Below are positions 4,801 through 32,577 of a stretch of 64,000 nucleotides of DNA, one piece after another (the first letter of the stretch is position 1; each line of letters opens with the position of its first letter). The DNA comes from Paraphysomonas bandaiensis (lineage: Eukaryota > Protista > Chrysophyceae). Below the pieces are notes generated by a model that was given only the letters and a program-made list of their open reading frames with translations, made no database searches and had not been told where the DNA came from. Location: positions 9,227-73,226 of the forward strand of contig CBFFRP010000014.1 of the NCBI GenBank assembly GCA_965644295.1. Reading direction: 5' to 3'. A program made the translations under genes and the position numbers.

Positions 4801-7800
4801 CACCTTCACCTGGAGCACTTTTCTGGTCAGCAATGTCACTACTATGCACCCCATCCATATTTTTCGCACCACCTTCTTTAGTCGCGTCTTTTAGCGCATT
4901 CTTCAAAGCTTGTAATTCTAAGTCTTGATTGTGAATTTGCTCCTCCAAACAAGAAACCTTAGAGCGAAAGTCGGTGGCAATTGATTCTGATGTGTCAACT
5001 TTCTGCCGCAATGTCTCGATCAGCGTGTCATTCTCGGATTGACTTTTCTTGTGTTCCTCTCGAACCTCGGTCAGCTTATCTTCAGCTTGCTGCAACTCAA
5101 TGGCACCCTGACGAACTTTGGACTCTAAGTCCTCCATAATAGCCTCATAGCTGCCAACTCGTTTCATAGCAGAGGCTGAAATCTCCAGCAAATCGTGCAT
5201 ACTATCCCGTTCACTCAATGGGTCATTGGCAATACTAACCAGCTGTGACTTCGTTGTATGTCCTCGCAACTTAGCTAAATCATTTTTAAGTTCATTATTT
5301 TCTTGCTGGGACATCCTTAGTCTTCTCTCGGCTTCTTGAAGGGCGTCACTGGTCTTCTGCGCCCCATTTTCCTCCTCTTTCAAGTTTTCCTCGAGAAGAC
5401 CCTTCGAACTGGAACTAAGTTTTCTTTTCAAACGCGCAATCTCCTCCATGAGAATATATGGATCGCTTTCCTCGTCAATATTTCGGTCGATAGAATTTGG
5501 GGACACATTAGAACCAGATTGGGCTTCAGAAGTAGCTTTCTCAGTAGCTTTCAAAGTCGCTTCCAACTTCATTTTTTCTTCTTTGATGTCTCTGAGCTGT
5601 TGTTCAGCGTTCTCTAGAGCAGTTGTGAGTTCCGCTTCTCGAAGGCCTGAATTACACAGGGCTTGTTGAGAATCCGCTAGTGCTGACTCCCCATTCTCCA
5701 CAGCTTTCTCCAACTCATGAATTCTCGCTTCATAAGTATTTGTATCGACAGACACCACAGATGCTAGCTTTCTGCGCAGGCGTGCATTTTCCGCCATAAG
5801 TTCATATCTCTCCACATCATCGTGGTCATCACCAGAGGGCGTTGCCACTACAGTTCCAGGAGTTGAGACACTACTCGACGCCTTCAGGATATTCAGCTCA
5901 TTTCGTGCTTGTTCAAGTTCTTCGGTCAATCTGGCATATTCATCATCAGTTTTCTGTATCTTTTGTTCAGCTTCCTGTAAATTCTTCGCACTTCGAGATA
6001 ATTGTGTCTCCAACTCACTTATATTTCCCGAAAGCTTAGAATTTTCAGCACTTCGTGCGAGCTCCTCCTTAAGTCTCGCATTCTCTTGTTGAGATTTTTC
6101 CAATACTATTCGAACATCTTCTGCTGGCAGTTCTGATTGCGGAGACTCACCCTCCACAACACCCCCCTCGTCATTGAAGTCCTTTTGAGTAGAATTACCA
6201 GTATTTAGTATACCATTCACTCTTTGAAGCTCAGATTCTAGGTATATTTTTGCCTGCTGGGCAGTGTGAAGCTCGTTAGTCATGGTCGACAGAGCAGCCT
6301 CTCTCTCAGTTTCCAGGTTTTTGTATGCCTTATTTTCATCAATTGCTATATCATACTGCCCTTGTAGCTGCGTCATTGCGGCCTTCAGCTCTGCAATCTG
6401 AGACATAAGGTCTTTAACACTGTCTACTCCGTCAATAATATCACTGCTCGCTGAGATTTCAGTATCTGAACTGGACTTCTTCACTGTTTCTTGGAGGAAC
6501 TGAATCGTCTCTTCCTGCTCACTGCACTTCTTCTGCAGTGCTTCAATCTCTGCATCTTTCTCCTGAATGCTAATTTCCAAGTCCACAACCTCTTGCTCGA
6601 GGCTATCCAAAGAGTCTGCGTATATATCTTCCTGCCCATCGTAATCTGAGCCTAGTTCTTCATCACCACGCATAACACTATTCACATATTGACGACCCCG
6701 TTCAAATTTCACTATCCATGGGTGATACGCGTTGAATTCTAGCTTCTTTAATTCGTCGATAGCAATATTGATATGTTGCAATCCTGCAGTCATTGTGTGA
6801 TTCTCCATAATCATTATTAAACCTAGATTCCCCTCAGCGTTTATTGTGCGGGGGTGCGTAGGCCCCAAAGCTGCAGTGAACACATCACGAGCACGGAGTC
6901 CAAATGTTTTCGCGGCAGGTATATCGTCCATGGCCCGACACAACGTACACAAATTGTTCAAAGACTCCGCAACAAGAACATGATCTTGACCTAAGCATTC
7001 TATACGTGTCGTGTGAGCATCCTCAAGGTACTTTTTGGCCTCATCAAACTGTGCTTCGATTGTAAGCAGCAAGCCGATGCTGTTGCATATCGATGCGTAC
7101 GCTAAACTTTTCACACCCTCACATCGGCCGGATATATAGCAGCAGTCAATGAGTTCTGTACGAGATACGAGAAGCAACCGGCTGTCTCCTCTACGAAAAT
7201 CTATACAGAAGTCCCTGAGTCCTTGCTTGGATTGCACAACCACCGGGTGCTCGTCACCAAAAAATGAAATACGGTCTTTCAGATTCTTCTCATAAATGGA
7301 CAAGAGCATGGTCAGGTTATCACCACGCTCACGCATGTTTTCGGCTTGACAGTGAATAACTTCACACACCGCCGGGTGACGCTCACCATACATTTGCTTG
7401 CGCAGAGTTAGAGCCTGCTCGTACAAACCTGCAGCCTCAGTGTGTTGCCCAAGGGTACGTAACAGTTCTGCTTTTCCCAGAAAGAATGTCGACCTAGCGG
7501 GAAGGTCCGTATTAATGGATAAGCCATTACCCTCATCTTTTATTGCGGCAGATGTCGCGTCGTAACGCTGTTGAAACAAGGCCTCGAGTGTATCGTAGTA
7601 CCCTTTGCTGTCCAAATAAGATCCAGTCACCAAAAGGTATGATGCCAAACCAAGCATTGTTTTGAAGTACTCTGGGTGGTATTTTCCCAGTGCACGTTCT
7701 TGTATAGTCAGCGCCTCTCTGTACAATTTAGAAGCCTCTTTGTAGCTACCTAACACCGCGTGACTGTCTGCAGCACTGCAGGAACTCCGGGATGACATAA

Positions 7801-25441: not shown

Positions 25442-26865
25442 TGTTTTGTTCAGTCATTCAACAAATATATTGTTGTCTATATATTATGTTGTTCTTTATC
25501 TAGGTTATATTATTGTGTATGTATTTTTCCTTTTTTATATTTTTGCATACACTGCGATATGTCTTTGTAAGTGTTACCGTAAGACTCAGTCAACATTCCT
25601 TCTATCACAACTCTCCCGGTTGCAATGTACGAGTGCTACATACGCGTTTTATATAATTGCATACCACATGTGTTTACTATTATTTAATACCACTGACTAC
25701 ATACAGATTTAGTAGAATGAAAGGATACCTGGATAACAATAACGGCAGCACTATAATATATTTTTCCAACTGGTTATATGATACGGGACGTCTTATGCAC
25801 GCTTAATTTTCCTCCACAATCTTAATCTCATCCTGAATAGGGTATGTCCCTAAAAGAATGATATCTTGGATAGTGGCCCAATTGACGATATACTCTATTA
25901 TACGGATCTTACCATACTTTTGATTCCTCGTACATAATAATAGAAAACAAGAGATTCTATATTATGACCATAATAACAAGAACTACTTAAGTAAAGAATT
26001 CGAAGAGAATGATATGAATGGATGAGATGAATATTCTTTTACGTTCATAAATCTCAGTCTAGTTAATGACGTATACAATTAAGAATGCTTACAATAATAT
26101 TATCCTTTCTTTCATCTGCTCCTGGCATTGCAACGCGAGTAGAATAATGTTCGTTCATTGAACAGCAAATAAAAGATTCACTGAAATATCGGCGTTCTGC
26201 TGTTGATCAACAGCAGCCTTTTCTAACTCATACTACAAGTGATTTGATCTAGATGTAGGTGTACTACGACATATTATGAAGACTACTACACACACGAGTT
26301 GTATGATGGGTCTAGATTTAGGTTAGTCTTGTCCTATTTTTCCGTACACATAGCAATCCTCATCTATTACGCTTATAGACTTCTCTTGTGTAGATACGGA
26401 ACGATCTCTTAAGCTTTATCTGAACAAATTTAAAGTCATTCTCTATAAGCACTCTTCTGTGTTTCCAGCTCTACCACACTTCGGATAGAAACACACCAGA
26501 TTTTGGTCAACGGAATTCATTTCAATCGCCAGAGATGACTATTTGGACTGTTCTTCTGCATAATCACCTCTGCGACATATGTTGTAACTATTTCATTAAA
26601 CGAAGTATTACATTTTGGGTACAAGAAGTTAGCATATATAATATAATGAATGTCTTTTTTTAGCAGTAGTAAGAAGTGTAAGCAGGGAGCTACTAAATTG
26701 AAATAATATAACAAATTCCCAGATATTTTATGCAAGCTATTTAGCTCTACATAAACTATCTGCAAGCATGAAGGTCCAACCATCCTTAAAAGTCGATATG
26801 ATGCCCAAACCTGGTAAAAAGGTAAAAACAAGTGGATAGTAGATACTAAAAAAGTAACATCCGTA

Positions 26866-27063
26866 TTGTGAGGGAGAGCGGGTGTGAAAAAAACTTTTTT
26901 TTCTCTCTTCTTCAATCTTCTTTGATCGCGATTACAAAACTTGCTCACCTACATTAAACAGTACCATAAACCCACAATTACCATGATAAGCACTGCAAAT
27001 CAAGGTGATTTCTTCTACAATGTGTTGAAGCAACCTTCTCTCACATGTTTGTCATTCGCAGCA
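26866..27063 (+). repeat. Left TIR (198 bp)
   Basis: Exact reverse complement of 30143-30340 by base-by-base reading. Confidence 0.95.
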
Positions 27064-28747
27064 TGTCATCAGACAGCCAAAACTCTGAAATAGAAGAAGG
27101 TCTGTGGGTGCGAGTAAAAATTGTCGCTTTGACTAAATTTCGAGAGGAAGCACAGGCATTCTCTGTAAATCGGTCCGAGTTAACTTCTTCGACAGACCAA
27201 TTAACGATTTGGGTGAGAATTACTGCAATTACTGCTAAAGATGTTTTAATATAACATTTTTTTTAGATTCCAGGAGGTAATCTTTTTGAAGACGATAGTA
27301 ATATCTGGCGTGTCAAAGGTCATGCATTCTTGCATGCACTCGTTGAGGGCGTAGCGAGGCAAGCGTATAATCAAAAGTTATTGCCACCACTATCAGACTT
27401 CAACGACCAACTCAGGATAGACTTCAGCAGAGGTATTACTGTTCGAACTGCAACAAGTTCTGGTATCATTGGTAATTTCCACATGATCCCTCCCGATGGA
27501 GAATTGGACATACCGTTACTTCCCACTAGACGCCAGACAGATCACGATAGGAAGTGTTGTCGGGAAAACGCTTCCCACTATGTGGTGATTGCTGGTGTCC
27601 CGTTCCAAAATTGCCCAGACGATGTGATACTACAGAGACAGCTCAGCTTTGTTGATTCTTCCCTTGCGCTTGTTAAACATAAACAGAATGATCTTCCCCT
27701 CTGTAAATACATGCACTCAAAATATTTCAAAGTTGGCCTGAATCATCGTCCAGGAAATGATATGAACACGTACTGGTCACCGGCAATGAAAGAAGCCATG
27801 ACCGAGTGCAGTGAAGAGGGTCAAAGACTCTTCGAGCTTAATCCTCCAAAAAGTATGCAAAGTGGTATCCGCAAGCAGAGAGGATTTGGTCACGGTGGTC
27901 AATCAGGTCTTAAGCTTTCAACCGCCAGTGAACATGATGCGGCGGACACATCGAGTCATTTGGAAGCACAAAGGAATCGCTTGCATATCGAGCGATGTCG
28001 TGCCAAAGCTTGGAGCAAGAAAGATTTGATTTCTGATAGCAAATTGAAAGATCTACTCGAGCTTCCCGAGGGCAAGAAAGTAAAGAGCTACTCGCAGTTA
28101 AGAACATACTTATGTGAATACTTTAGTACCCTAGAAGGTGAAGAACGTGCAGCTGAAGACCCGTTGGAGTATGACCCGACACTCGATACATGGGTTCTCA
28201 AGTTGGATTGGATGGGTCAAGACTTCCCAAAATATAGTGACCTCAAGGGGGGTAATAAGCCAATACCTGCAGCCCGTGAAAATATCATATTCTCGTCGGT
28301 TCGAATAGGACCACACCCGCCACCACCACCGCCCCCTGCTCTACCAGCTCCTCCAGGTGTTCCAGCACAAGGTTGGCCTATCCCAATTGGTGTTCCCCCT
28401 GCTGGAAGTAGTGGCCCTTCTTTTGGTGTCCCTTTTCCCCTTCCACCAGACTGTGGACCATCGCCCTACGGGGTATACCCCCTCCTATTTATCCAACTGG
28501 GGGTTTTCCTTTTCAGCAGCAGCTTCCTCCGTATTACCCACAGGGATCTGCTCCTCGGCATTATCCGCATCACATGCTGTATGGCTACCCGCCAGAATAT
28601 TACCACGGCCACAGGGATTTTGATTATGCATCGCGTTATCGCCAACAGCGATTTGCCTGGGGAGAAGGAATGCGAAAGGATGAGAGGGGTGAGTGGATAG
28701 CATATGAGGCCGAGTATGAAATTCCTTATCCTGCCGACCCTTACTAA
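27063..28747 (+). CDS. Transposon cargo gene of unknown function, about 543 aa, with a Pro/Tyr/Gln-rich C-terminus
   Basis: Exon 27063-27212 (MSSDSQ...QLTIW), GT-AG intron 27213-27266, then in frame with ORF 27330-28700. Adding one C to the C5 run at 28478-28482 continues the composition as YPPPIYPTGGFPFQQQLPPYYPQ...IPYPADPY* ending at 28747. Confidence 0.8.
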
Positions 28748-29101
28748 ATAGAACAGATTGCAGTCAATCGTTATCTGCCGGGTCTCATTTATTATTTATT
28801 TCGAATCTTGGTAATTTTTGGATGAATTTAACACATACGCTCCGATGCATCGAAATTTAGGTTTAGACTCACTAACCGATTTTCTTTTTTCTTCTTAGTA
28901 TGCAACTGTATGAACTGATATTTTAAATTCTCCACAAACTTTTCAAAATTTTGTTTTTTTGATTTATTAATATTACTTGAATCTATTGCGTATAATTAAT
29001 CATATTCTATCACGAAGTAGTAGCAAGCATATCACATTCAATCATCAGTACATCTATATTAGTAACTAGTGAGTAGAGTATAGAGTATAATCTGCAAATG
29101 A

Positions 29102-30132
29102 TCAATAGTTACAGGCTTCGCACTGTTCTTTCCAAGTAACGGTAATATCCACTCGATTGAATAAATTGCACGCAGTTTCGGCAGTACAGCATGACCACAA
29201 AGCTTCATGTAGTTGAGCTGCAAGTGGTTTATATGCGTACATAATTCCCCACTTCTTTCTAATGTGCGCTTTGGCAAGATGAAATACGGGTTCAATTGGT
29301 GAAAAATCATAAGAATAAGGGGGAGAAACACAACCATCACGCCGAATTCTGCACACATATTATAAATATCTATCTTCACGTGCGTCGAAGCATTATCCAT
29401 GAGCAGCACACTGCGATCCCCAGGAAAAGGGTTCATGTGGGGAAAGATGTCATGTTCTAGGGCATCTAGAAATGTATTATGATCAACATTTTCTTCGTGT
29501 ACAGTAACAGCAAAAACTCCTTCGATAGACATTGCAGCAATGGCACAACAACTAACTTGGGGATTGAAGTGGCCTATAACATCACCACTCACGAAGGCAG
29601 GGTAGCCATGTGGTGAACGCCCATATCGGCGTAGAACTTCTGCCGGCTGGAGATGTGATTCGTCCACAACAGCATAGCAGCGAGCTGGAATTTCATCCAA
29701 TGATCGGGCCAAATTATTCTTATAGTAACGCCTCAAGCCCTCATTTCTGTTGTGGGAAATTCTTTGACAAACTTTTACGGTATAGCCCTCAGTGTTCATG
29801 GCATGCTTCATTTGGTGCTCCAAGTACGCCACGCCGTACACATTAAAAACCTTTTCGCATAATTCTTCGTTGGAATAAGTTGAATTTTCTGCCAGCAACT
29901 CTTTAACAAAATTGATATGCTCGAGTGAAATGACAGTGTGGTGCGAATGGTGTGAAGACTCTGGTTTAACTGATCCAGTGTCCAGATATTTGTCCAACCA
30001 CCTTCTAACTGTGCTTTGGGACACATCGTATTTCTCGTATATATGATCTAGTGATGCGGCCACAGAATTTGTGATTTCCAGAGAGTGATCAAACACATCC
30101 AAAATTAAAAGACGGAAAGCCTCGGAATACAT
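29102..30132 (-). CDS. DD34E transposase (IS630/Tc1-like), about 343 aa, with a one-base frameshift in a homopolymer
   Basis: N-terminal HTH (VSQSTVRRWL), VVDESH and LLMDNASTH are present. Restoring one base in the G5 run at 29319-29323 gives FLPPYSYDFSPIE, with 34 residues between the second D and the E. Confidence 0.92.
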
Positions 30133-30142
30133 GTAAATATGG

Positions 30143-30340
30143 TGCTGCGAATGACAAACATGTGAGAGAAGGTTGCTTCAACACATTGTAGAAGAAATCA
30201 CCTTGATTTGCAGTGCTTATCATGGTAATTGTGGGTTTATGGTACTGTTTAATGTAGGTGAGCAAGTTTTGTAATCGCGATCAAAGAAGATTGAAGAAGA
30301 GAGAAAAAAAAGTTTTTTTCACACCCGCTCTCCCTCACAA
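30143..30340 (-). repeat. Right TIR (198 bp)
   Basis: Exact reverse complement of 26866-27063. Confidence 0.95.
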
Positions 30341-30584
30341 TAACTAATATAAACTTTATTAAATGTCTTTTAAAACATCATGTTCTCTTCACACGGTACC
30401 TCTACTACAAAACAAGTCGAGGTAATACCAAAACCTGGGTTTTGATGTAAAACCTGGTGAAATTTTTGGTGATGGTCGGAAAAGGGTATAACTATGCACA
30501 ATAAGTAACTATGAAGTTAATAACAGTGTGAAGAGTATTATTTATAATATTTTTTACTAATTTCTTCCATATTACTTCAGTTTT

Positions 30585-32112
30585 ACAGCAATAAAAGTCA
30601 CCGACTACACATATATATTACATACAGTTCACAAGTATGAACTATAACCATCTCACTAAACACCACTATACCATCTCAGAATACACCCACATACCATCTC
30701 ACTATACACCCATATACCATCTCACTATACACCCATACCATATTACTATGCATCACTATACCATCCCACTATATTATACCACTATACCATCTACTGTATA
30801 CCACTATACCACCTAACTATACACTACACTATCTCACTATACACCCATATACCATCTCACTATACACTCATATACCATCTCACTATACACCCATACCATA
30901 TTACTATGCATCACTATACCATCCCACTATATTATACCACTATACCATCTACTGTATACCACTATACCACCTAACTATACATCACTACACTATCTCACTA
31001 TACACCCATATACCATTTCACTATACACCTACGTATGGGACAAATCATACGCGATGGGCAGAAACCAAGCCAAAGGAAAAACCGGGCCTGATCACATAAC
31101 AACGGCCTCAGCATGCGCAGACTGTGCACTCCCAATCGACAACATGGCACACATGCTTCTCACCTGCACACACCCCGACCTCACTCACATACGTGAAGAT
31201 GTTCACCAAGCACACCACAACAAGTTCGACAAACTTCGCACACGCACGCTCCCTCATCCCTGGTTCCACACCGCCATAATCAAACTAGCAAAAGCCGCAT
31301 GGAATCCACACACACCCCAGGCTGAGCGCTACTGGACCGGCCACATTACTGCCACACAATTGACCGACGCATTCGGACGCCACATATCCAGCTCACTGCT
31401 CGAACATCAGTTCCACGTTCTCGAAAAATCCGTAACCTCTATCCTCCTTCCCCTATATGGTGGAGGGCTCCGCATGCTTCGAAACAGAGGTCTCAGACAT
31501 CACAACACAGAGACACTGCATCAGTAACACCGATTACGACCCCACCACACTCACAGCAACGCCCGTCGCAGGATACTCACCCGACACCAAAAATACTCCA
31601 ACTACTCCTAGCGACATCCACCCCAAGAATTCTATCCGCTGCAAGAGTCGAACCCGACAGAGACAAGCACCACCACTCCGGAAACAACTCCTCCTTACTT
31701 GTGGTCGAAATCCCACCTCGACAACGAGCACCATCTACACCACCGACTTACACTCTCATATACATCTAGCCCCAACCATCCCCCGTAAAACTCACGATAC
31801 AGGCCCGGCAAACACACTGCCCAAAGGCAGACCCCCCGATTAACCTCACTGCAAGGGACGGTTGAACCATGGTGCTCGCAGCGATGCACAAGCAGTCCCG
31901 AGACGGTAGCCCGCTAATAGTAGTATATAGTAAGTCGAGTTATTAGTTATTCTATAGATGTAAAACTAGTTTCTGTACGCAACCGTTCTCATGTAATAAT
32001 CAGCTATTCTTTTATATTTCACTATACACCCATATACTACCTCACTATACAGCACTATATTATACCACTATACCATCTCACTATACATCACTATACCATC
32101 TCACTATATACC
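30585..32112. repeat. CACTATACCATCT-type minisatellite interrupted by a LINE
   Basis: Many cactatac/accatct variants at 30585-31029, including a higher-order duplication of about 155 bp. The array resumes at 32016-32112. Confidence 0.85.
31030..32015 (+). mobile_element. 5'-truncated non-LTR retrotransposon (LINE 3' end)
   Basis: CADCALPIDNMAHMLLTC fits the C-x2-C-x8-H-x4-C knuckle found after RT in LINEs. The 15-bp duplication atttcactatacacc flanks it at 31015-31029 and 32016-32030. Confidence 0.8.
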
Positions 32113-32577
32113 ACACTGCACTAACTGTGTACATATTATGGTGTAGGAGAAGTGCAACGGGAAGAAGAATGTTGTCAACATTCGTGGCGACATATCCAAC
32201 GACGACCCGGAGGCGGAGGAAGAGATACCACGAAAGCGCACGAGCAGGGTAAGTAATACTGTTCATAAAGATGGTGACGGGGTCGTATGTCGTATATATG
32301 CGGTATTGTTCTGATTATTGCTGTGCGTTGTTACTATACACTGCACTAACTGTGTACATATTATGGTGTAGGAGAAGTGCAACGGGAAGAAGAATGTTGT
32401 CAACATTCGTGGCGACATATCCAACGACGACCCGGAGGCGGAGGAAGAGATACCACGAAAGCGCACGAGCAGGGTAAGTAATACTGTTCATAAAGATGGT
32501 GACGGGGTCGTATGTCGTATATATGCGGTATTGTTCTGATTATTGTTGTGCGTTGTTACTATACACTGTACTAACTG
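32113..32577 (+). repeat. 225-bp tandem duplication containing an exon-like unit
   Basis: Units start at 32113 and 32338, with a partial third at 32563, and are nearly identical. Each contains tgtag|GAGAAG...AGCAGG|gtaagt. Confidence 0.9.

Follow-up and report, generated by a model that had tools for sequence, protein, structure and literature searches.

The window, a 64,000-nt stretch of the Paraphysomonas bandaiensis genome, contains a perfect inverted repeat (26864-27063 versus 30143-30342) enclosing two genes in convergent orientation, an ORF on the + strand and a DDE_3 transposase on the − strand (Table 1). Comparison of 12 copies together with their flanks reveals that similarity ends exactly at the repeat ends, and that a single TA restores the empty site in (TATG)n arrays. 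From this flank divergence and empty-site register, we delimit the element proper to 26866-30340, that is, 3,475 bp with 198-bp terminal inverted repeats (TIRs) and a TA target-site duplication.

The transposase matches Pfam DDE_3 (PF13358) at 8.7e-10. The intact protein, as translated from copy L008, displays a D...D-34-E triad in which the E lies within ...SPIEP..., in the block ...FLPPYS.D.SPIEP.... The element thus combines a DDE_3 transposase carrying a DD34E triad with both TIRs and a TA target-site duplication, which identifies it as a member of the Tc1/mariner-IS630 group. Additional matches of the transposase to HTH_23, HTH_32 and PAX are all below the curated cut-offs. The element is a young, active Tc1/IS630-type cut-and-paste transposon with two genes, the second of which, hereafter the accessory gene, is the main subject of this analysis.

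Table 1. Coordinates of the features of the two-gene element, numbered from the first base of the window
Feature	Positions	Strand	Basis or remark
Left TA target-site duplication	26864..26865	.	Flank divergence in 12 copies; single TA inside (TATG)n arrays
Left 198-bp TIR; promoter or leader and 5'-UTR intron of accessory gene	26866..27063	+	100% complementary to 30143-30340; RNA contigs begin within
TIR intron, 57 nt, GT..AG, in accessory 5' UTR	27005..27061	+	Joint 27002>27060 (cut +2) in X16, equivalent piece in X15; absent from DNA run X2
First coding exon of accessory gene (50 aa)	27063..27212	+	Translation; exon sequence and ...IW|GT boundary kept in L022 and L026; P0003 carries the exon1-exon2 junction
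Coding intron, 54 nt, GT..AG	27213..27266	+	Joint in X15 and X16 RNA contigs, shorter side 152 nt; absent from DNA run
Second coding exon of accessory gene (493 aa in intact copies)	27267..28747	+	Window copy one C short after 28477
Predicted N-terminal α/β domain (exon-2 residues 1-150, probably also exon 1)	27267..27716	+	Block-mean pLDDT mostly 64-91; 46 around residues 89-99
Predicted disordered linker (residues 155-229)	27729..27953	+	pLDDT < 50; conserved basic/Gly-rich stretch and ...TA.EHDAA.SS...
Predicted C-terminal α/β domain (exon-2 residues 230-348)	27954..28310	+	Block-mean pLDDT mostly 83-95; 67 around residues 291-300
"MBD-like" segment, 34 aa	28011..28112	+	In the model: end of long helix, helix (DSKLKDLL), loop, 3-residue strand (KKV), helix
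Low-complexity tail: poly-Pro, then P/Y/Q/H-rich, acidic/aromatic end	28311..28744	+	Translation
3' UTR of accessory transcript, as far as contigs reach	28748..29002	+	RNA contig ends at 28992 (X16) and 29002 (X15)
DD34E transposase gene, convergent (343 aa in intact copies)	29102..30132	-	Pfam DDE_3; window copy one base short after 29318, in a coding-strand C run
Right 198-bp TIR	30143..30340	-	100% complementary to left TIR
Mirror copy of 57-nt TIR intron, in transposase 5' UTR	30145..30201	-	Joint 30144>30202 (CT..AC on + strand) in X16, equivalent piece in X15
Right TA target-site duplication	30341..30342	.	Flank comparison

Copies and Insertion Sites

The 62.5-Mb genome contains 26 occurrences of the TIR, and hence 13 full-length elements. 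The left TIR sequence is identical across all 13 genomic copies, 12 of which share 99.8-100% identity, and the last (L011) 99.0%. All 13 are full length, and the genome yielded no internally deleted derivative. A decayed relic, in which pieces of both genes are kept, was found at C375, and the element is present in ocean metagenomes too.

The insertion sites are strongly biased. Seven of 12 insertions, in both orientations, are hosted by (TATG)n/(CATA)n arrays, and a metagenome copy (L016) is likewise inserted in a (TATG)n-type array. Such arrays of at least 24 bp total only ~0.57 Mb, which is 0.9% of the genome, and the chance of at least 7 of 12 insertions falling in them is ~3e-8 when weighted by TA density. 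This bias may be caused by the accessory protein, by the transposase alone, or by the survival of harmless insertions.

Transcription and Splicing

Transcription of each gene runs inward from one of the identical 198-bp TIRs, and the transcripts are spliced and polyadenylated. The RNA evidence consists of polyA metatranscriptome contigs from two runs (X15 and X16) of one marine sample, with a DNA run (X2) as a control. Spliced polyA contigs exist for both genes, each with the same 57-nt TIR intron removed, and none of the splice joints, whether of the coding intron or of the TIR introns, is present in the DNA run. The short side of the TIR-intron joint measures only 26-28 nt, as is expected of a de Bruijn assembler where the two transcripts have TIR sequence in common. 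For both genes the contigs begin in the TIRs, their exact starts being masked by the TIR sequence common to both transcripts. On the accessory side, TIR splicing takes out an upstream in-frame ATG at 27045. At the other end, the accessory transcript stops at ~28992-29002 and that of the transposase at ~29011, so that the two convergent transcripts nearly abut. An MMETSP culture transcript (P0003), which is independent of X15 and X16, contains the exon1-exon2 junction of the accessory gene. Together with the spliced polyA contigs, it confirms that the gene is expressed, a point on which the initial annotation had made its reading depend.

The accessory gene begins exactly at the inner TIR edge, with its ATG at 27063 and its stop codon at 28745-28747. 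The initial annotation had described a spliced ORF of about 543 aa. This holds for the intact copies, which encode a protein of 543 aa (50 + 493) with one, RNA-confirmed, coding intron, the intact reference copy of exon 2 being L002:904-2382. It does not hold for the window copy, in which the C run after 28477 counts five bases instead of six and the frame is broken. An alignment of 20 copies revealed two polymorphic single-base indels, one in the accessory gene (after 28477) and one in the transposase gene (after 29318), both sitting in C5/C6 runs of the coding strand. The longer form is found at both sites in all eight short-read metagenome contigs, in three RNA runs and in one DNA run, and encodes both the intact 543-aa accessory protein and the intact 343-aa transposase. 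The window copy lacks both bases, which is either a real frameshift pair or an assembly error in homopolymers. P0001, a 99% identical protein from an ocean-metagenome database, has one more C and reads through the C-run region. A second coding intron at 28473-28516 was also considered and was ruled out, since this stretch is continuous, with the extra C, in the RNA and in every contig built from reads.

Relatives and Conservation

An exhaustive HMMER search of 1.84 billion protein representatives with the accessory protein identified six proteins in all. A word search with the accessory protein matched only itself, and word searches with the family profile added no members. A homologous gene is present in five further lineages, and in four of these (L022, L026, L028 and L024) it lies beside, and convergent with, a related transposase, whose identity to that of the window element is 63-64%, 54%, 50% and 33%, respectively. 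The metagenome contig L022 encodes P0002, a protein of 544 aa that is 40-43% identical over ~340 residues, followed by a convergent 343-aa DDE_3 transposase. This contig shares with the window element the exon-1 sequence and the position of the intron after ...IW, and also carries an intron in the 5' UTR ahead of the transposase ATG. The intron position is also kept in L026, which consists of exon 1, the accessory gene (P0005) and a convergent transposase. L028 was found via a transposase-alignment scan of metagenomes, followed by a search of those loci with the accessory profile. L024 (C249) was found by running the accessory-family profile on the genome and is a second, distant family of this same genome, in the form of a two-gene element with 187-nt TIRs and a multi-exon accessory gene. 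In the fifth lineage (L108), a frameshifted contig that is the source of P0004 and P0006, no transposase was seen; being frameshifted, it was left out of rate estimates.

Across the genome, the family profile finds only element copies, and thus no host paralog of the accessory gene. When the window element is compared with L022, nucleotide identity at the three codon positions is 0.54/0.63/0.36 in the accessory gene and 0.68/0.81/0.41 in the transposase gene, a pattern indicative of constrained coding sequence, the accessory gene being less constrained than the transposase. As judged from these comparisons, the accessory gene is under purifying constraint and is co-inherited with one transposase clade. 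While the initial annotation had called the protein a "cargo", a gene that adjoins the transposase in four further lineages, that shows coding constraint and that has no host paralog is better described as a core accessory gene of a transposon clade than as captured cargo. Beside other related transposases, there are convergent ORFs that are not homologous to it.

Predicted Architecture of the Accessory Protein

We modeled the accessory protein with AlphaFold2, using an 11-row alignment of the lineages. The resulting model has a mean pLDDT of 69.9 and covers exon 2 only, without the 50 residues of exon 1. An earlier AlphaFold model based on a five-row alignment (mean pLDDT 48.5) was too poor to use, and a fold search with it returned nothing. 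The predicted structure suggests two folded α/β domains connected by a disordered linker and followed by a low-complexity tail (Table 1), which supports the initial description of an element-encoded protein with folded domains and such a tail. The predicted model draws on five or six lineages only. The putative N-terminal domain contains the conserved blocks LDFSRGI.VRTA and L.R.L.F.D, and the ...TA.EHDAA.SS... motif of the linker is conserved in four lineages. In the model, the C-terminal domain is composed of, in this order, a long helix, a helix, a short strand, a helix, a β-hairpin and two helices, and it is marked by the conserved P[LF]E[WY]D...W..K..W...FP.[YF] motif. The tails of the homologs are unalignable and have other compositions, consisting of RS/RD repeats, H/S/R repeats or, in L028, Q/M/P repeats. 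The tail is thus, as far as these sequences tell, a fast-evolving part of the protein.

Neither domain could be matched to a known fold. Pfam gave no match for any exon of the accessory gene, nor for six family members even at E<=10. With the exon-2 model, the best match of Foldseek against the PDB had an E value of 0.84, and fold searches with VIA-align, BFVD and ESM Atlas returned nothing; the best score of an ESM Atlas feature search (0.81) was at chance level. In the PDB, a weak sequence match to the LOTUS domain of Oskar (E 0.016) was gone when the family profile was used, and was dropped as chance. The apparent lack of a known fold for either predicted domain is provisional, since the model lacks exon 1 and the C-terminal domain was searched only within the exon-2 model.

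Comparison with Methyl-CpG-Binding Domains

The initial annotation had drawn attention to a segment of the C-terminal domain that resembles a string of methyl-CpG-binding domain (MBD) proteins. Translation confirms the exact position of this segment (Table 1), as well as the poly-Pro and P/Y/Q/H-rich tail that follows it. The likeness to MBD proteins (MeCP2, MBD1-4; PF01429) is literal, and consists of the string P-x-G-K-K-x-[KR]-S-x-x-Q-L-x-x-Y-L, with a helix after it. None of the profile, sequence and structure tests raised this likeness above chance. Unlike in MBD proteins, there is no profile match and no β-sheet ahead of the motif, and the family does not conserve the key residues.

Profile and sequence searches were uniformly negative. 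The Pfam MBD profile (PF01429) matches none of six family members at E<=10, and a six-frame search of the whole genome with it identified one host locus (24 bits) and 0 of 13 element copies. When the family profile was aligned to this host MBD with hhalign, the probability was 0.12%, and the aligned columns were not at the motif. PDB sequence searches returned no MBD chain at E<=10; the best partners were trehalose-phosphate synthase for the motif segment (E 0.07) and the C-lobe of MAP kinase 13 for the profile (E 1.5), both of which are helix-loop-helix stretches.

The predicted structure leads to the same outcome. The model, in which pLDDT is mostly 83-95 in this domain, places a long helix (229-250) and a second helix (257-264) ahead of the motif, where MBDs have a sheet. 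These are followed by a loop, a strand (270-272), a helix (275-287) and then a β-hairpin and two helices. No MBD structure is found among the Foldseek or VIA-align matches, the C-terminal domain having been searched within the exon-2 model. The MBD fold that the initial annotation had anticipated is therefore not seen, either as a sheet in the model or among the fold matches.

As for the conservation of the motif, it stands in part. The closer homologs keep it, as LPNDKKIRSFPQLRSFL and LPADKRIKNSEQLRTLF, and by lineage it reads LPEGKKV-KSYSQLRTYL, LPNDKKI-RSFPQLRSFL, LPADKRI-KNSEQLRTLF, APVGIVC-KNFTSLRSLF and LPSNVVILPAGNKVLRHFL. In contrast, other residues take the place of GKK and [KR]-S in L028 (PVGIVC-KN) and L024 (PSNVVILPAGN), the most divergent of the lineages. 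It is therefore the scaffold L..A..LP...LR.FL that is conserved, and the basic GKK/[KR]S residues behind the MBD look are not. By profile, sequence and model, the accessory protein is not an MBD protein.

A Possible Helper of Transposition

The explanation that we favor, tentatively, is that the accessory protein is a transposition helper for the transposase. Its promoter and leader mirror those of the transposase, and it would be supplied in step with that enzyme. Its folded domains would contact the transposase, the long TIRs or target DNA, or more than one of these, its tail would bring the protein to nuclear bodies or chromatin, and it would be required for integration or for target choice, as is MURB for MuDR or the Myb-like protein for Harbinger. 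The (TATG)n insertion bias could then possibly be due to the helper. Counting for this reading are the conserved two-gene element, the expression of both genes, the lack of a host paralog and the target bias. What limits it is that no biochemical function is readable from sequence or model by Pfam, PDB-sequence, Foldseek, VIA-align or Atlas searches, and that the RS-like tails of the relatives would suit an RNA-linked role equally. A predicted complex of the transposase and the accessory protein scored 0.00, which gives no verdict and is evidence for neither side. A bolder version, that the protein represents a new class of Tc1/mariner helper steering integration into (TATG)n microsatellites as safe havens, is unlikely. 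If true, such steering would mean that a protein guides the choice of target for a eukaryotic cut-and-paste transposon of an enzyme family, Tc1/mariner, for which a TA is otherwise considered sufficient as a target.

Several known systems provide points of comparison. In PIF/Harbinger, the transposase enters the nucleus with the help of a second element-encoded protein, which also binds the element ends. The element described here likewise moves by cut-and-paste, and may likewise depend on its second protein. However, the Harbinger helper has a Myb/SANT domain, none is recognizable here, and the transposase superfamily differs. The closest parallel in design is MuDR of maize, which has two convergent genes, the mudrA transposase and the mudrB helper, each driven from one of two near-identical ~200-bp TIRs. 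MuDR TIRs act as promoters. Here too, two convergent genes are each transcribed from a TIR, as RNA contigs beginning in the TIRs indicate. Nevertheless, MuDR belongs to the Mutator superfamily and makes 9-bp duplications, in contrast to the Tc1/IS630 membership and TA duplication seen here, and the likeness drawn here is one of design, with nothing to suggest homology to MURB. The mudrB product is needed for MuDR integration and is, like the accessory protein, lineage-restricted and of no known fold (PMC6446971).

Closer in enzyme are the IS630/Tc1 elements of ciliates (TBE, Tec, Sardine, Thon, Anchois and Tennessee), which contain extra hypothetical ORFs, one of them conserved between Anchois, Sardine and Tennessee (PMC3464196, PMC7325037). 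Compared by description, they share with our element a transposase of the same group (DDE_3, DD34E/DD35E) and the presence of additional ORFs; they differ in that here there are two genes only, no tyrosine recombinase, and TIRs that serve as promoters. No ciliate relative of the accessory protein was found among the 1.84 billion representatives, in which germline-limited elements are poorly represented.

Alternatively, the protein could be an anti-silencing factor acting against host chromatin or RNAi-based silencing, much as VANC does for VANDAL/Hiun, a role that we find quite unlikely. There is precedent in VANC of Arabidopsis VANDAL21/Hiun, which is, like the protein studied here, element-encoded, fast-evolving and accessory, and which acts for its own element family (PMC6446971). 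An element-specific, fast-evolving protein with a variable low-complexity tail would fit an arms race, and convergent transcription could give antisense RNA, a natural trigger of silencing. However, Pfam and fold searches revealed no resemblance to domains linked with silencing, and the conservation of the folded domains from lineage to lineage suggests a constant partner. Signs of a methylation machinery in the host came to a single match to a DNA_methylase exon. We know of no sequence or domain similarity between VANC and the accessory protein.

The tails of the relatives lead to another alternative, that of an RNA-handling factor. Such a factor would bind the element's transcripts or the splicing/export machinery, thereby securing intron-bearing mRNAs launched from the TIRs. 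The RS/RD and H/S/R repeats in these tails resemble those of splicing factors, the linker is basic and Gly-rich, and both mRNAs need TIR splicing, which removes the upstream ATG. Against this, Pfam detected no RRM, KH or other RNA-binding domain, and the composition of the tail varies, from P/Y/Q/H here to Q/M/P in L028. We regard this role as quite unlikely.

We regard as very doubtful a role as negative regulator, in which the protein would limit the activity of the transposase and so control copy number. Identical promoters would hold the ratio of inhibitor to enzyme fixed, and the copy number, 13, is modest. A pure inhibitor would, however, be hard for selection to retain over five further lineages, with transposases down to 33% identity, and to our knowledge no negative regulator of such a form is known in the Tc1/mariner group.

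That the gene is a passenger, either a captured host gene or an ORF without a role in the life of the element, is highly improbable: no function can be assigned to the protein, and other related transposases adjoin non-homologous convergent ORFs, but the genome offers no host paralog of the gene, and in four further lineages the gene stays beside the transposase, its intron position conserved and its sequence constrained as coding. It also starts exactly where the TIR ends on the inside, and depends on the promoter and intron of that TIR. Finally, a methyl-CpG chromatin reader of the MBD type is extremely implausible, since the 17-residue string that resembles the strand-helix core of MBD proteins, kept in three closer lineages and compatible locally with the short strand and helix of the model, is outweighed by the failure of the PF01429 profile to match any family member or any copy in the genome, by unrelated PDB chains that score better, by the hhalign result, by helices where MBDs have a sheet, and by the loss of the basic residues in L028 and L024.

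Significance

Tc1/mariner elements are textbook single-gene transposons, and two-gene DNA transposons are known already. The accessory protein family, its association with Tc1/IS630 elements of marine protists, and a TIR-embedded promoter with an intron appear to be undescribed in the literature searched. A conserved second gene, mirrored TIR promoters with an intron and a microsatellite bias together widen the range of Tc1/mariner designs. The element looks currently active, considering its 13 near-identical full-length copies and the occurrence of both its mRNAs in the ocean and in the transcriptome of a culture. With an apparently active element and a marine protist host that is held in a culture collection, the helper role proposed for the accessory protein is directly testable, and the element could become a tool for gene delivery or mutagenesis in marine protists, where such tools are few.

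Target Sites and Integrity of the Element

The transposon shows a strong insertion bias toward (TATG)n/(CATA)n microsatellites. Of 12 genomic copies, 7 lie within such arrays, which account for about 0.9% of the genome (P about 3e-8). The loci concerned are window 26864/30342 and L001-L011; insertions occur in both orientations, and one metagenome copy (L016) likewise sits within such an array.

In the window copy, each of the two genes is one base short in a C5/C6 run, at 28477 and 29318. None of the assembly copies has both genes intact, and both are intact in all short-read contigs and all RNA contigs of the element. We suspect that the missing bases are long-read homopolymer errors.

Should transcription begin 5' of position 26983, the accessory mRNA would carry in its spliced leader (region 26983-27062) a short upstream ORF that begins at the ATG at 26983 and overlaps the main accessory ATG out of frame. 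Splicing of the 57-nt intron in the terminal inverted repeat (TIR) takes out an ATG at 27045.

Neighboring and Nested Repeats

The copy at locus L007 carries an insertion that looks like a hAT-type nonautonomous element; its TIRs begin CAGGGATAGGGAAC, and the associated duplication is 8 bp long (CTAAGAAG). The second two-gene element is itself nested, being enclosed by a 932-nt inverted repeat whose arms (570-1501 and 5498-6429) are 99% identical and each contain ORFs of their own.

Coordinates of repeats and inserted elements (G000, genome assembly; C, contig)
Feature	Location	Remarks
L024, second, distant two-gene element	G000:C249:7000-14000	187-nt TIRs
Arrays of ~23-nt unit (CCATCTCACTATACACCCATATA-like), including higher-order repeats of 158 nt	window 30600-31050 and 32000-32560	immediately right of element
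Perfect 225-nt tandem duplication	window 32113-32562	right of element
1,033-bp insertion in one element copy	L007:1953-2985	equivalent to window ~28891-28898, between accessory gene and transposase

Possible Host Methylation Genes and Related Transposases

A single genomic locus, L023 (G000:C432:109704-109853), matches the Pfam MBD profile, scoring 24 bits within an open frame of 265 aa, and DNA_methylase gives one exon match in the genome (C74:179914-180213). The host may have a small 5mC toolkit.

On four other metagenome contigs (L033, L036, L038, and L040), a related transposase is accompanied by a convergent downstream ORF. Homology between these ORFs and the accessory-protein family is not detectable; that of L036 ends in GQG repeats, and that of L038 has a faint echo of ...Y.L..NW.... 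The accessory genes found beside related transposases may have been swapped, or have diverged past recognition.
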